From Epiperipatus broadwayi (taxonomy: Eukaryota > Animalia > Onychophora), in NCBI GenBank assembly GCA_028023455.1, contig JAQFVV010000006.1:1426001-1490000 (forward strand): a stretch of 64,000 nucleotides of DNA, given 5' to 3'. Both the position numbers and the translations under genes were made by a program. Under the pieces are notes generated by a model. The model worked only from the letters and a program-made list of their open reading frames with translations. It had not been told where the DNA came from and made no database searches. Shown here one piece after another: positions 21,466-43,522 of the stretch. Position 1 is the stretch's first letter; every line of letters starts with the position of its first letter.

Positions 21466-21511
21466 ACCCAAGATGTGCATTTCATATTGATCCAGCACTC
21501 ATCAGTTGGAC
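21466..21511 (-). ncRNA. Minimal type I HHR motif (family A-related)
   Basis: Minus strand reads GTCCAA-CTGATGA-GTGCTGGATCAATAT-GAAA-TG CA CA-TC-TTGGGT. Stem I is 6 bp with two wobbles, stem III is ATG/CAT, the triplet is AUC, and stem II is weak. Confidence 0.65.
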
Positions 21512-27464: not shown

Positions 27465-27872
27465 CATCACATGATCACCATTTCTTATGCTTGCTCAAGC
27501 TGTTAAACAGGCAAAACTCTTTATACAGTAGTGCCACTCAGTGCGAACCAGAGTAATCAATGAATGCAAGAAGGTTTGTGCATAAAATGCCTATTTGGTG
27601 CCTACTCATTCAATATCCCCTGACTATTTCTAGCTTGTGGCTTTCATCAGTGAGGAGCCTTGGATCTGATAGCCATGCACCTAGGTCTTAGGATCAGTGC
27701 TTTCATATCCAAGGCTCCTCACTGATGAAAGCCACAAGCTAGAAACTAGTCTGGGGATATTGGATGAGTAGGCACTAGATAGGTATTTTATGCACCAACT
27801 TTCTTGCATCCATTGATTACTCTGGCTTGTATTGAGTAGCACTACTGTATGGATAGTTTTGCCTGTTTTATC
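27465..27872. mobile_element. Family B tail-out inverted pair centred ~27690
   Basis: Minus arm 27465-~27690 (decayed HHR at 27616-27656) and plus arm ~27695-27872 (intact HHR at 27716-27757). Confidence 0.88.
27716..27757 (+). ncRNA. Minimal type I HHR (family B)
   Basis: TCCTCA-CTGATGA-A AGC cacaa GCT A-GAAA-C TA G-TC-TGGGGA. 6-bp stem I, 3-bp stem II, palindromic ACTAGT stem III, GUC triplet. Confidence 0.85.
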
Positions 27873-29789: not shown

Positions 29790-30135
29790 GGATCAGATTG
29801 ACTTAAGATCAACATGGGTACGATAACAATATTGATATCAACAAGGGCTTTGAGCATTCCAGTCTTGGATTTTCAATGAAATGGATGGCTGAAGGGTTGG
29901 AGAGTGGAGAAGATTGAAGCTTATCCATTAAAGTTTAAAGATTTGCTATTTTAATATAAACTGAGCATTGATTGTATATATGTGTGGGAGATGGTGATCT
30001 GGACCAACTGATGAGCGCTGGTTCAACGTGAAATACATGTATTGGAGATCATTTGGTCATATGTATCAATTGTATAAGATAGATTGGATAGATGTAGGGT
30101 GCTTGAAAGTTCAAGTCCTTTATAATTACATTAAG
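29790..30135 (+). mobile_element. Family A retrozyme-like element
   Basis: Homologous to 35041-35330, 56338-57066 and 58123-58270. Contains the HHR at 30004-30045. Confidence 0.8.
30004..30045 (+). ncRNA. Minimal type I HHR (family A)
   Basis: CCAA-CTGATGA-GCGCTG gtt CAACGT-GAAA-TACATG-TA-TTGG. Stem I is CCAA/TTGG and the triplet is GUA. Confidence 0.7.
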
Positions 30136-30170
30136 TTACATATAGACAATATACATATATTTAAATATAT

Positions 30171-32517
30171 AATTAAAATTACCCCAAATCCAAAATTCAA
30201 CCAGACCAGCAAAAAATAATATTAAAACACAACCAAAAGTTTCACTGCTACAAGCAGACTTCTCAAGTGTAAAGAACAACAAAAACTACACAATATATAT
30301 AATATTAAACATTACCCACAAATCCATTCACTTCCCATCCACCCTTAATATTAAAAGAACTCTTAAATAAGTTAATTGCTTCAGAATAATAAATTTTCAA
30401 TAATAAAGATTCTTTAATTCTTCTTTTGATTTCATTTCTCTCAAAGAAGACAACCTTAGCTTCATCAAAATTAATAGTGTGGCCTGTATCTTTTTCATGA
30501 CATACAAAGCAGAACTAAGATATCTATTTTTAACTCTACTTTTATGAACCTTTATTCTTTCATTTAAACTCAAACTACTCTGACCTATGTAAACCTTCTT
30601 ACAAATAAACAAGGAATAAAATATACTATACCAGGAATAGTCTTTCTATCAAAAACTTCTTTTGTATTATTTAATAAATTATTCAATGTAACACCCCTTT
30701 TCCAAGCAATTTTCTTATTTCCAAACAATTTACTATTTCTACACACAATTTTATAAGAAGACAATTTAAATGGCAAAGAAATAAAATCATATTTTTTCTC
30801 TATCCTTTACATCCTTAACAGTATTACTATTAAATAAAATACTTTTAACAAATTTATCAGAGTAACCAACCCTCAGGTAATCTTTATAAAATTGACCTTT
30901 CTGAAACAAAGCTACCCCACTAGAATTATTTAATTTATTATTCCTATGACAATAATTCCTTAAAGCAGCTACTTTATGAGATACAGACTGATAGCTATCA
31001 TGTTTAATTAGAGATCTTAATTCTTTACTTTTAACTAAATGACTGCACAATAAACAATTAGTCTCTACATTTCTAATCACCAAAAGATCTAATAATTTTA
31101 ACTTACCAAAATCTAACCCCCCTCCTAACATAAATTTTATAGAAGGATCAAAACAATTAAACCCATTTACAAATTCCTTCAATTTATCATTCTCAATTAC
31201 AAATAAACAATCATCAACATAACTGACAAATAACTTTACATATAAACAATTCTTTTTAATAATAATTTCCTCTTCCATATAATTAATATAAACTGAACAT
31301 ACTAAAGGAGAAATAATATAACCTATTATCCACCCTTCCTTAATTTTATAAAAATTACCATTATAAGTAAAATACATAGAATCTTCCAATAATAAAAGCA
31401 AATCTTTAATTACCTTAATTTTATTTTTTGTTAAAGAACTTTTTTAATCAATACAGACATAAGAACATCAATACTGCTTAACCTATTAACAGACTGATAC
31501 ATATTTTCAATATCTAAACTGCCAAATACCCAATTACTTTCCATTTTAAAATTATTAATCTTATCAAAAGCCTCAAAAGAAGAAGAAACTGTGTAATGAC
31601 CAAAATCAACAAATTGTTTTAAAAAATTATTCAAGAATCTAGAAATACCCTCTACAACACTACCTGTAAAATCAAAAATAAATCTTAAAGGAAAACCATC
31701 TTTATGAGTCTTAATATTCACAAACATCTTAGCTGATGTAAAATCATTTGGATAACATTTTAAATAATCTACACTATTAAAATTTTTTAAATTAACCCAT
31801 TTTCTTCATAATATTTATCAACTTTCTTTTAATCAAATTACCTGGATCTTTATCTAAAAACATATATTTACCATTATTTAATTCTTTATCCATTTGCTCT
31901 TTGAATTCATCTCCTTTCGTAATGACAAACCTACCAGCTTTGTCTTCATGAGAAATGATCACATCATTAGCAATTAACCTATTCTTAAGATGTCTAACCT
32001 CAGCAGGATTAACCACAAATTTTTCTTTCCTTTTTAAACTTTTATTCAAAATCGATTGAACACCAACTTTCTGCTCATCACTCAAATTACTAGATTCAAT
32101 AGACAAAATTGTATCAAAAACTATATTTTTTGAATGAAATGGAACAAAATTAGGGCCTTTACCAAGAATATCTAATTCTCTATCATTTAACTTAATATCA
32201 GAAAGATTAACAACTCTATTATCAGAAGCATTACTCTCATACCCCTTATCACTACAATAAGTTTTATTAACTTTCCCAAACAACCACTTTAATTTTCTTT
32301 CATATTTCTTACAATAGAAATTTGACCTATTCTGTCTAAATTGCCTCATGAAAAAATTCAAAATTGAATAATTAAAATCTTGCCTCCTGTCTAAATAATA
32401 TCTATTTCTTTTATATACATAAATAAATTTGTAAAACTTTACAAAATTTTCTTTCAAAAAACTATTCAAAATATATGTTTGTAACTTAAAAACCAAATTC
32501 CTATTTTGAAGCAACCT
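30171..32517 (-). mobile_element. Penelope-like retroelement, left arm (RT + GIY-YIG; frameshifted, 5'-truncated)
   Basis: ORF pieces 31792-32514, 31431-31727 (KTHKDGFPLRFIF, SLDIENMY), 30787-31401 (ISPLVCSVYINYME, YVDDCL) and 30397-30776 (GIVYFIPC..YIGQS..ERIKVH). Confidence 0.93.
30227..30270 (-). ncRNA. Variant type I HHR (U3-A8) in PLE 3' end, left arm
   Basis: Minus strand reads ACAC-TTGAGAA-GTCTGCTTGTAGCAGT-GAAA-CT ttt GG-TT-GTGT. Confidence 0.7.
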
Positions 32518-32527
32518 TTTTTTTTTT

Positions 32528-34922
32528 AGGATAGAGTCTTTAAGATGGCAGATTTATTTTCATAAAAAATGTAGGGAATTTAGTGTTTTTCCTAGGTGTT
32601 GTGTTATTAATTTTAGTAGAAATAAAAAATTGCTTCAAAATAGGAATTTGGTTTTTAAGTTACAAACATATATTTTGAATAGTTTTTTGAAAGAAAATTT
32701 TATAAAGTTTTACAAATTTATTTATGTATATAAAAGAAATAGATATTATTTAGACAGGAGGCAAGATTTTAATTATTCAATTTTGAATTTTTTCATGAGG
32801 CAATTTAGACAGAATAGGTCAAATTTCTATTGTAAGAAATATGAAAGAAAATTAAAGTGGTTGTTTGGGAAAGTTAATAAAATTTATTGTAGTGATAAGG
32901 GGTATGAGAGTAATGCTTCTGATAATAGAGTTGTTAATCTTTCTGATATTAAGTTAAATGATAGAGGATTAGATATTCTTGGTAAAGGCCCTAATTTTGT
33001 TCCATTTCATTAAAAGAACATAGTTTTTGATACAATTTCGTCTATTGAATCTTGTAATTTGAGTGATGAGCAAAAAGTTGGTATTCAATCGATTTTGAAT
33101 AAAAGTTTAAAAAGGAAAGAAAAATTTGTGGTTAATCCTGCTGAGGTTAGACATCTTAAGAGTAGGTTAATTGCTAATGATGTGATCATTTCTCGTGAAG
33201 ACAAAGCTGTTAGGTTTGTCATTATGAAAGGAGATGAATTCAAAGAGAAAATGGATAAAGAATTAAATAATGGTAAATATATGTTTTTAGATAAAGATCC
33301 AGGTAATTTGATTAAAAGAAAGTTGATAGATATTATGAAGAAAATGGGTTAATTTAAAAAATTTTAATAGTGCAGATTATTTAAAATGTTATCCAAATGA
33401 TTTCATATCAGCTAAGATGTTTGTGAATATTAAGACTCATAAAGATGGTTTTCCTTTAAGATTTATTTTTGATTTAGATTCTTGAATAATTTTTTAAAAC
33501 AATTTGTTGATTTTGGTCATTACACAGTTTCTCCTTCTTTTGAGGCTTTTGATAAGATTAATAATTTTAAAATGGAAAGTAATTGGGTATTTGACAGTTT
33601 AGATATTGAAAATATGTATCAGTCTGTTAATAGGTTAAGCAGTATTGATGTTCTTATGTCTGTATTGATTAAAAAAAGTTCTTTAACAAAAAATAAAATT
33701 AAGGTAATTAAAGATTTGCTTTTATTATTGGAAGATTCTATGTATTTTACTTATAAAGGTAATTTTTATAAGATTAAGGAAGGTTGGATAATAGGTTATA
33801 TTATTTCTCCTTTAGTATGTTCACTTTATATTAATTATATGGAAGAGGAAATTATTATTAAAAAGAATTGTTTATATATAAAGTTATTTGTCAGATATGT
33901 TGATGATTGTTTATTTGTAGTTGAGAATGATAAATTGAAGGAATTTGTAAATGAGTTAAATTGTTTTGATCCTTCTATAAAATTTGTGTTAGAAGGAGGG
34001 GGGTTAGATTTTGGTAAGTTAAAATTTTTAGATCTTTTGGTGATTAGAAATGTAGAGACTAATTGTTTACTATACAGTCATTTTGTTAAAAGTAGAGAAT
34101 TAAGATCTATAATTAAACCTGATAGCTATCAGTCTGTATCTCATAAAGTAGCTGCTTTAAGGACTTATTGTCATAGGAATAATAAATTAAATAATTCTAG
34201 TGGGGTAGCTTTGTTTCAGAAAGTTCAATTTTATAAAGATTACCTGAGGGTTGGTTACTCTGATAAATTTGTTAAAAGTATTTTATTTAATAGTAATATT
34301 TGTAAGGATGTAAAGGATAGAGAAAAAATATGATTTTATTTCTTTGCCATTTAAATTGTCTTCTTATAAAATTGTATGTAGAAATAGTAAATTGTTTGGA
34401 AATAAGAAAAATGCTTGGAAAAGGGGTGTTACATTGAATAATTTATTAAATAATACAAAAGAAATTTTTGGTAGAAAGACTATTCCCGGTGTAGTATATT
34501 TTATCCCTTGTTTATTTTGTAAGAAGGGCTACATAGGTCAGAGTAGTTTGAGTTTAAATGAAAGAATAAAGGTTCATAAAAGTAGAGTTAAAAATAGATA
34601 TCTTAGTTCTGCTTTGTATGTCCATGAAAAAGATACAGGTCACACTATTGATTTTGATGAAGCTAAGGTTGTCTTCTTTGAGAGAAATGAAATCAAAAGA
34701 AGAATTAAAGAGTCTTTATTATTGAAAATTTATTATTCTGAAGCAATTAACTTATTTAAGAGTTCTTTTAATATTAAGGGTGGATGGGAAGTGAATGGAT
34801 TTGTGGGTAATGTTTAATATTATATATATTGTGTAGTTTTTGTAGTTCTTTACACTTGAGAAGTCTGCTTGTAGCAGTGAAACCTTTGGTTGTGTTTTAA
34901 TATTTTTTTTTGCTGGTCTGGT
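32528..34922 (+). mobile_element. Penelope-like retroelement, right arm (RT + GIY-YIG; frameshifted, 5'-truncated)
   Basis: The frame is open from ~32528 (RIESLRWQIYFHKKC...) into ORF 32630. RT lies at 33482-34333 (SLDIENMY, ISPLVCSLY, RYVDDCL, KFLDLLV). GIY-YIG lies at 34344-34817 (GVVYFIPCLFCKKGYIGQS...ERIKVH...HEKDTGHTIDF...KESLLL...AIN). It is an inverted copy of 30171-32517. Confidence 0.95.
34852..34895 (+). ncRNA. Variant type I HHR (U3-A8) in PLE 3' end, right arm
   Basis: ACAC-TTGAGAA-G T CTGCT tgt AGCAG T-GAAA-CC ttt GG-TT-GTGT. Stem I is ACAC/GTGT, stem III is ACC/GGT, the triplet is GUU, and cleavage is predicted after 34891. It lies 35 nt after the GIY-YIG stop codon. Confidence 0.75.
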
Positions 34923-34954: not shown

Positions 34955-35700
34955 AAGGTGACACTTTAGTCTTCATTAAAATCATTATGATTATTCATGA
35001 ATGTTAAATATTTGATAGTACATTTTATTTAATTAATTAATATATAGGGGATTTGAACCCAGACTTTCATACGACCCTCAACCATCCATGCTATCTCTTA
35101 CTGCTGATACACTTGATCACACATATGTTGAAAAGATAAATAATCACCAATATTCTTATTTCATGCTAAACCAGAACTCGTCAGTTGGTCCAGATTATCA
35201 TCTCCACACATATATACAATCAATGCTCAGCTTATATTAAGATAGTCAATCTTCAAACTTCAATGGACAGACTTCAAACACTCCACCCATAACTCTTCAG
35301 CCATCCATTTCATTGAAAATCTGATGATGGAACGCGCAAAGCCTGAAAGTCGGAGTTCAAACCCCTATATATTACATATAGAAGTGCAGGTATGAAAATG
35401 CCTGTACTGTAGAAAAAATTCATATTTTAATTAATTAAGTAAATTTAACTTTGAAAGATAAGTTGTTTGAAATCTCTAGAGTATTTTTATATCTATTATA
35501 TATTCTTTATTAGCCATCTTTTGCCATTAAATAAATTTGATGTTAATACAGAAAATGGAGTTATTATTTAGGATCTTTGTTTAAAATGATTCTTTAAATC
35601 TTTGAAAGTTAAATTTATATAATTAGTTAAATAAAAAGCACTGTCAAATATTTAGCAGTCCTAAATCATCATAAGTAATATAGACTAAAATTTCACCTTG
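34955..35700. mobile_element. Old MITE-like foldback (~80-bp diverged TIRs) hosting a family A insertion
   Basis: 34955-35035 (AAGGTGACACTTTAGTC...AAATATTTGATAGTAC...) is an imperfect reverse complement of 35620-35700 (...GCACTGTCAAATATTT...GACTAAAATTTCACCTT). Confidence 0.55.
35041..35425 (-). mobile_element. Family A element (minus body + short inverted plus 3' tail) with ~13-bp TSD
   Basis: The HHR lies at 35146-35189 (minus: ACCAA-CTGACGA-...-GAAA-TAAGAA-TA-TTGGT). An inverted 3' tail starts at ~35342. Flanks TTTAATTAATTAA lie at ~35028-35040 and ~35426-35438. Confidence 0.8.
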
Positions 35701-41920: not shown

Positions 41921-42296
41921 ATTGAACTTGTAGTAAAGCCCATGTTTTTTCCATGCGCCCACACATTGATTACCATTTGATATACTATTTTAAATTATTA
42001 ATTGACCGTAGTAAATACTTTAAAATGTTGCATTTATATTTTTGTCATTGTGATTTTTTATGTCTGTTTTAGACTCTAATTAAAATAACGAAGTTTAAAT
42101 AAATTATTTTCATCTCTTCTTTAATTATCTAGTTTTTTTATTTTTAATATGACTTTGTTTATCGGACTAGCCTCAATTTCTTTTTTTGTATTTACTGACT
42201 AACTATTCATCTCACTTTAATTACTTGTGTTGAGATATATATCATTGCATATTATTTTCATTTATAATATAACCCCAATACTTACATACATACATT

Positions 42297-43038
42297 AATT
42301 AAAATTACCTCAAATCCAAAACTCAACTAGACTAGTCACGAAAAACGAAAAAACAAAATCGAAAACACAACCAAAGGTTTCACTGCTACAAGCAGACTTC
42401 TCAAGTATAAAGAACTACAAAAACAACACCATATATATATGTTAAACATTACCCACAAATCCATTTACTTCCCATCCCTCCTTAATATTAAAAGAACTCT
42501 TAAATAAGTTAATTGCTTCAGAATAATACATTATCGATAATAAAGATTTTTTAATTCTTCTTTTTATTTCATTTCTCACAAAGAAGGCAACCTTAGCTTC
42601 ATCAAAATTAATAGTGTGGCCTGTATCTTTTTCATGGACATACAAAGCAGAACTAAGATATTTATTTCTAATCCTACTTCTATGAATGTCTTAGTTCTGC
42701 TTTGTATGTCCATGAAAAAGATACAGGCCACACTATTAATTTTGATGAAGCTAAAGTTGTCTTCTTTGAGAGAAATGAAATAAGAAGAATTAAAGAATCT
42801 TTATTATTGAAAATGTATTATTCTGAAGCAATTAACTTATTTAAGAGTTCTTTTAATATTAAGGGTGGATGGGAAGTAAATGGATTTGTGGGTAATGTTT
42901 AACATATATATATGGTGTTGTTTTTGTAGTTCTTTATACTCGAGAAGTCTGCTTGTAGCAGTGAAACCTTTGGTTGTGTTTTTGATTGTTTTTTCATGGC
43001 TAGTCTGGTTGAGTTTTGGATTTGGGGTAATTTTAATT
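42297..43038. mobile_element. Mini tail-out palindrome of the PLE 3' end (GIY-YIG C-terminus + HHR on each arm)
   Basis: Minus arm 42297-~42687 and plus arm ~42689-43038. Both encode YVHEKDTGHTINFDEAKV...GFVGNV and both end at GGGGTAATTTTAATT. HHR variants lie at 42365-42408 (-) and 42936-42979 (+, U4C). Confidence 0.92.
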
Positions 43039-43522
43039 ATTTATTGACTAATTTAGCTTCATGCTTGTAATGTATACATACATTAGGCATTTATTAAAAG
43101 ATACGTCCACTCCAATCCTAAGTTTAAAAAAAAAAAAACTGCTCTAGAGATTAGTTTTACAATAATTATACAAACCAGTCTTTGAACCACAAATATGCCC
43201 ATATATAGAACATACTGGTCGATTTCTTTTTTTTTATTTGATATTTTACAATCTGTCTTTTAATTTCTTCAGAAGATAACTATTTTTTCTGAAATATTTC
43301 AACACCATGTCTAATTGTAACTCTCCAATGTATTCTATTCTCTGCCATGTCTTCTTAATAGAAACAGTCTTCTTTAAAATATCTTTATGATAATCTTTGT
43401 AATGAAAATGGTGTCTACTTTCCCAAGAAAACCATAATCAAGTCACTGTAAAGCGCTTTTAAAAAACTTCATATTAATCAGTGTTTCACACATCTAATTT
43501 AACTGTGTATGGTTTTACAATA

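Follow-up and report, generated by a model that had tools for sequence, protein, structure and literature searches.

A hammerhead-type motif with a U3-A8 core just past the endonuclease gene of an abundant Penelope-like retroelement, probably a known covariant form

The stretch of DNA analysed here, which we call the window, comprises 64,000 nt of a eukaryotic assembly of 5.6 Gb with ~28% G+C. It carries an element of ~2.3 kb that is present as a head-to-head pair, whose two arms are 96-98% identical and meet at a 95-nt centre (Table 1). In the right arm the open reading frame survives in pieces that encode a reverse transcriptase (RT) domain followed, on the same strand, by a C-terminal GIY-YIG endonuclease (EN), in whose translation the GIY-YIG and C..C/H..H motifs are readable. 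The frame is interrupted by stops in both arms, and the window copies are therefore dead relics. Insertion as fold-backs or tandems with a 30-40-bp tail at one end has been described for Penelope-like retroelements (PLEs; PMC8557442), and the head-to-head arms with one longer tail match that architecture. The element is an endonuclease-positive PLE that inserts as head-to-head fold-backs. The larger fold-back is nested between older inverted copies of another repeat (29846-30054 and 35138-35343, 79-88% identical), which bear canonical CUGAUGA/CUGACGA hammerhead cores at 30008(+) and 35184(-) that point towards the PLE.

Table 1. Features of the Penelope-like element and its hammerhead-type motifs in the window
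Feature	Position	Strand	Remarks
Left arm, head-to-head PLE pair	30164..32524	-	3' tail ~40 nt longer than that of the right arm
Right arm, head-to-head PLE pair	32620..34922	+	ORF in pieces; short 3' tail, ends 31 nt past predicted cut
ORF piece, reverse transcriptase domain	33482..34333	+	RVT_1, E 8.6e-9
ORF piece, C-terminal GIY-YIG endonuclease	34344..34817	+	Pfam E 0.0031, below curated cut-off
Hammerhead-type motif	34852..34895	+	predicted cut after U17 = 34891
Second copy, in the other fold-back arm	30227..30270	-	helix III C-to-U change, U-G wobble left
Short fold-back, two 5'-truncated 3' ends of the same element	42296..43045	.	centre near 42673, long tails in both arms
Third copy, in the short 5'-truncated fold-back	42365..42408	-	helix I AUAC/GUGU
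Fourth copy	42936..42979	+	core UCGAGAA, invariant U4 -> C

Directly read, the 44 nt of the motif in the right arm run ACAC, UUGAGAA, a helix II hairpin, GAAA, CC-UUU-GG, U16.1, U17 and GUGU. This is a type-I hammerhead layout with helix I open, formed by the 4 bp of ACAC/GUGU. Helix II has 5 bp (CUGCU-UGU-AGCAG) and an irregular foot, with G and U on its 5' side and U on its 3' side, while helix III consists of A15.1-U16.1 and two C-G pairs, 3 bp in total, closed by a 3-nt UUU loop. In hammerhead numbering the core reads U3 U4 G5 A6 G7 A8 A9, then G12 A13 A14. The hammerhead core nucleotides U4 G5 A6 N7 A9, G12 A13 A14, A15.1-U16.1 and H17 are all present and in the correct order (34856-34891); the sole departure from the invariant core is the replacement of C3-G8 by U3-A8, which still permits a Watson-Crick pair. 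Traits of the PLE class of hammerheads are seen as well, namely the short helix I, the irregular or unpaired base at the 5' foot of helix II, the location at the 3' end of a PLE and the occurrence in opposite-strand pairs. An earlier note on this DNA had read the letters in the same way and had placed the motif just 3' of the GIY-YIG stop, and both points are borne out, with 34 nt separating it from the end of the ORF piece. Its remark that a CUGANGA descriptor would miss the motif also holds, U3 standing in place of C3.

The 28-nt core of the motif matches four sites in the window with <=3 mismatches, at 30239-30266(-), 34856-34883(+), 42377-42404(-) and 42940-42967(+), and finds no match at that tolerance in 100 shuffles of the window. 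All four copies listed in the earlier note were thus recovered by the core; what it had overlooked is the C at position U4 of the fourth, which is a decayed copy because this invariant U is replaced. Its further suggestion, that copy variants such as AUAC/GUGU in helix I and CU/GG in helix III keep the pairing, falls away, as these are single C-to-T transitions that always leave a G-U wobble and constitute no structural evidence.

Might the resemblance be accidental? A loose hammerhead descriptor recovers three of the four window copies and also yields ~2 matches per shuffled 64-kb window, both strands counted, so that one descriptor match alone is not significant, and it is position, copy number and conservation that lend significance. 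An AT-rich 3' UTR could on this account fit such a descriptor by chance, and the short stems and the missing Rfam hit agree with that. Rfam indeed reported no hammerhead, either at the gathering score over the whole window or at E up to 10 in 251-nt and 7-kb stretches. This blank carries no weight, since the canonical cores at 30008(+), 35184(-) and 36056(+) likewise went unreported, even in the 251-nt search. At ~1.6e-5 matches per position per strand, moreover, a sense match <=100 nt past an EN stop would be expected only ~0.002 times per family. The motif is also depleted of subfamily variants, recurs in two PLE families with unrelated helices and corresponds feature for feature to a published PLE variant, all of which are taken up below. 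We consider a chance resemblance highly improbable.

Copy numbers were obtained by pattern matching of the 28-nt core over the element's own 5.6-Gb assembly. The 28-mer has 21,548 matches with <=3 mismatches, while the control gave 0. Exact copies with U3/A8 number 8,406; exact counterparts with C3/A8 number 80 and those with U3/G8 number 20. A single exact copy carries C3/G8, where ~0.2 would be expected from the two single changes. The U-A pair is fixed in the family, which has no C-G subfamily, and the single variants resemble products of decay; exact counts of the four 3/8 states over the whole assembly revealed no compensatory 3-8 switch inside the family. C3/A8 exceeds U3/G8 four to one, although the transitions concerned, T-to-C and A-to-G, are equivalent between strands. 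Some of these copies are the two arms of one fold-back, so common descent may account for part of the C3/A8 excess. As to the assembly, its 18,588 contigs equal 3 x 6,196, and large contigs restart near C6204 and C12393; the contigs appear to form three length-sorted sets, and if these are haplotypes or separate assemblies, the counts given may exceed the true copy numbers about threefold. Exact-pattern scans of metagenome_contigs and genome_contigs returned no match.

The copies are arranged in a characteristic way. Among the first 50 pairs of neighbouring exact copies, about 24 are in -/+ orientation, 49 nt to 7.6 kb apart. Of the first 100 exact copies, roughly half belong to -/+ head-to-head pairs and no more than two or three to same-strand tandems. 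With so few tandems, two sense motifs would rarely share one transcript. Where copies do stand in tandem, a single transcript could give rise to a dimeric hammerhead. Rare tandem neighbours, all on the plus strand, are found at G000:C1:2078106 and 2078272 (L001; 166 nt apart) and at G000:C1:32669143 and 32669694 (551 nt).

Genomic copies decay neutrally, and variants common to many copies are those fixed in active source lineages; on this rationale, 100 copies were picked by means of a 26-nt anchor that lies outside the motif, where the ORF ends, and were aligned. Copies interrupted by unrelated sequence were removed, which left 91 for analysis. An alternative base present in >=8 of the 91 copies occurs at 9 of 47 sites in the upstream spacer, at 1 of 44 in the motif and at 3 of 45 downstream; with the cut-off lowered to >=5 copies the figures become 12/47, 2/44 and 6/45. 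The spacer differs from the motif at both cut-offs (Fisher, p 0.016 and p 0.008, respectively), while the difference between motif and downstream tail at the higher one is not significant. Rare changes amount to 1.2-1.8 per site, all three regions alike. Of the two variable sites within the motif, one is the third base of loop 3 (A 70, U 19, G 2) and the other, detected with the lower cut-off only, is H17 (U 86, A 5, G 0); these are exactly the positions that a hammerhead tolerates. All 11 core nucleotides are kept in 83 of the 91 copies. This pattern suggests that the motif was under constraint in active lineages. The helices themselves contribute no covariation within the family: changed pair cells are broken in 26 cases, kept in 8 and doubly changed in 0, so that no helix shows a compensatory double change among the 91 copies. 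A first count had yielded 11 'double' helix changes; these arose spuriously from 4 interrupted copies, in which unrelated sequence had been aligned, and vanished with their removal.

Constraint of this kind need not act on catalysis. The conserved block spans consensus positions 64-133, loop 2 included, and reaches beyond the motif by ~9 nt on the upstream side and by 17 nt on the downstream side; as it is wider than the motif, and as motif and tail do not differ significantly, the constraint is not uniquely attributable to catalysis. The first ~17 nt past the motif (consensus positions 117-133; compare window 34896-34922) are no richer in subfamily variants than the motif, and the arm with the short tail ends directly after GCUGGUCUGG. 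This region directly 3' of the motif may be an element that the reverse transcriptase recognises or at which it initiates. A rival account arises here, in which the motif descends from a hammerhead and cuts negligibly or not at all, the block being kept as a signal for binding of the PLE reverse transcriptase or initiation in target-primed reverse transcription. The extent of the block beyond the motif, including loop 2 and the start of the tail, is in keeping with this account. So is the fact that every genomic copy carries the motif together with 31-67 nt past the cut site, from which it follows that the templates had been uncut at the predicted site. Biochemical work on one PLE points the same way: its hammerhead mutants insert normally in vitro, and the start of reverse transcription is internal, close to the 3' end (PMC11167929). 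Against it, the eleven core nucleotides kept are exactly what a hammerhead requires, and shared variation is confined to the two hammerhead-tolerant positions, with H17 never a G.

Folding predictions bear on the same issue. The hammerhead secondary structure, with helices of 4, 5 and 3 bp, is worth -4.5 kcal/mol versus -7.6 for the alternative minimum free energy fold. A 56-nt region folds no better than its shuffles (z 0.19), and helix II, the only thermodynamically robust one, is alone in the centroid, which again favours a block that does not cut. Such weakness of the fold is usual for PLE hammerheads. The majority form of the helix III strand, A-CCUUAGG-U, is self-complementary save for a central U-U, and its duplex is predicted at -8.4 kcal/mol. 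The loop-3 variants UUA, AUU and UUG give helix III duplexes of -8.2 to -8.9 kcal/mol versus -5.1 for UUU, which is the minor form found in the window. In these calculations the self-complementary strand fits a dimeric helix III.

Does the U3-A8 core belong to this one family only? A second PLE family, with RT and EN ~28% identical to those of the first (tblastn among sampled loci; L009 386-1305, L132-L143), carries a motif that starts 57 nt past the EN stop and reads UUGAUAA, one unpaired A, GACUA/UAGUC, GAAA, the palindromic loop GUAC, U and U (L009). It has 7,056 matches in the genome, often as -/+ pairs, and in one copy both members of a helix II pair are changed, from G-C to A-U. The two families resemble each other in the U3-A8 core, in its position tens of nt past the GIY-YIG stop, in head-to-head pairing and in copies running to thousands. 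They differ in helix III, which in the second family has the classic min-hammerhead form of a 1-bp stem closed by the palindromic loop GUAC, as opposed to 3 bp in the first. Helices II and III are in fact wholly different between the two, and the U3-A8 core is kept. Judged from sequence, this recurrence of the core with unrelated helices is the best argument for a hammerhead core and against a family-specific accident, and it also tells against a block retained purely for the reverse transcriptase. Weighing both sides, we regard a descendant with no or negligible cutting as unlikely, yet far less so than a chance resemblance. A descriptor tally of 3/8 states over all sampled DNA was dominated by the first family by construction and is of no use as evidence.

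How does the motif relate to published hammerheads? Cervera & de la Pena 2014 (PMC4209133) describe min-hammerheads in the pseudo-LTRs of all PLEs examined there, which cleave weakly and as dimers. The same text records U3-A8 in place of C3-G8 in PLE min-hammerheads of Schistosoma mansoni, found by homology after a descriptor had missed them, with ~1,300 hits. The statement in the earlier note that core variants are on record from PLEs is borne out by this precedent, and the U3-A8 covariation itself is thus already published for PLE hammerheads and not new here. With the Cercyon-related PLE min-hammerheads of S. mansoni, as set out in that text, the present motif shares the type-I layout, U3-A8, the PLE 3'/pseudo-LTR location and a short helix I (4-5 bp). 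The PLE min-hammerheads described there also share with it an unpaired base at the 5' end of helix II, escape from CUGANGA descriptors, thousands of mostly solo copies and opposite-strand pairs a few hundred bp apart. Helix III differs, being a real 3-bp stem with a 3-nt loop here versus absent or 1 bp in those motifs; helix II has 5 bp and an irregular foot here versus 7-8 bp. The copy number is higher and the host different here, in a comparison made by description and not base by base with the motifs of that text.

Canonical metazoan type-I hammerheads, of the Rfam Hammerhead_1 type found in retrozyme and satellite repeats, have in common with the motif the order of the core, the succession of GAAA, helix III and the UH cut site, and a palindromic stretch in helix III that lends itself to dimer formation. 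They differ in the core pair, which is U-A here and C-G there, and no loop 1/loop 2 contact is recognisable in the present motif. The hammerhead of the PLE Poseidon from Anolis carolinensis (PAc; PMC11167929) is likewise PLE-borne, but it is C3-G8 and overlaps the start of the ORF in the pseudo-LTR, whereas here U3-A8 lies past the EN stop. Its 3-8 pair was demonstrated by single and double compensatory mutants. The PAc ribozyme requires protein in order to cleave, and insertion in vitro does not depend on it. Hammerheads are lacking in Naiad PLEs, which flourish all the same (Craig et al., PMC8557442).

Based on these observations, we interpret the motif as probably a PLE 3'/pseudo-LTR hammerhead ribozyme motif in its published U3-A8 covariant form. 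Under this interpretation PLE transcripts would be cut after U17 (34891), which would separate the body of the element from a tail of 31-67 nt; alternatively, the cut would serve to resolve read-through and multimeric transcripts. Cleavage would probably be slow and would take place only with help, either from a second copy paired through the near-palindromic helix III (consensus CCUUAGG) or from the element's protein.

What are the implications of a U3-A8 core on this scale? A very large natural family, with thousands of copies, joins the few documented U3-A8 replacements, together with a second, unrelated family that has the same core, and the U3-A8 state stayed fixed while the element diversified. 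The case is also a reminder for annotation that most PLE hammerheads escape searches by descriptor or with Rfam. Our understanding of how hammerheads or PLEs work is not changed by it. With U3-A8 in two deeply diverged families, we may speculate, somewhat doubtfully, that core pairs other than C-G are the rule and not the exception among the PLEs of this animal. If that were true, a whole retroelement community of tens of thousands of copies would depend on an attenuated, helper-dependent hammerhead, and nature would thereby have supplied a covariation series of the 3-8 pair on a large scale. There would also be a hint of selection for slow cleavage, which might, for instance, allow template RNA to survive at full length.

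Other hammerhead motifs were encountered alongside. A third PLE family (EN 30-37% identical), seen at L003:1240-1300(+) and on the minus strand of L030 (~1238 of the reverse complement), bears the motif ACU-CUGUGGA-U-GGCUUG...CAAGUC-GAAA-CG-UC-AGU, with a C3-G8 core and U at the normally invariant position 6. In the window, about a dozen clear canonical C3-G8 type-I cores of other repeats stand among 18 raw pattern matches, for example at 27650(-), 27722(+), 36056(+), 39953(-), 40105(+) and 55850(+), and at 21505(-), 46647(-), 56934(+) and 58265(-). These cores, none of them reported by Rfam, belong to at least two non-coding, retrozyme-like repeat families and several form inverted pairs.
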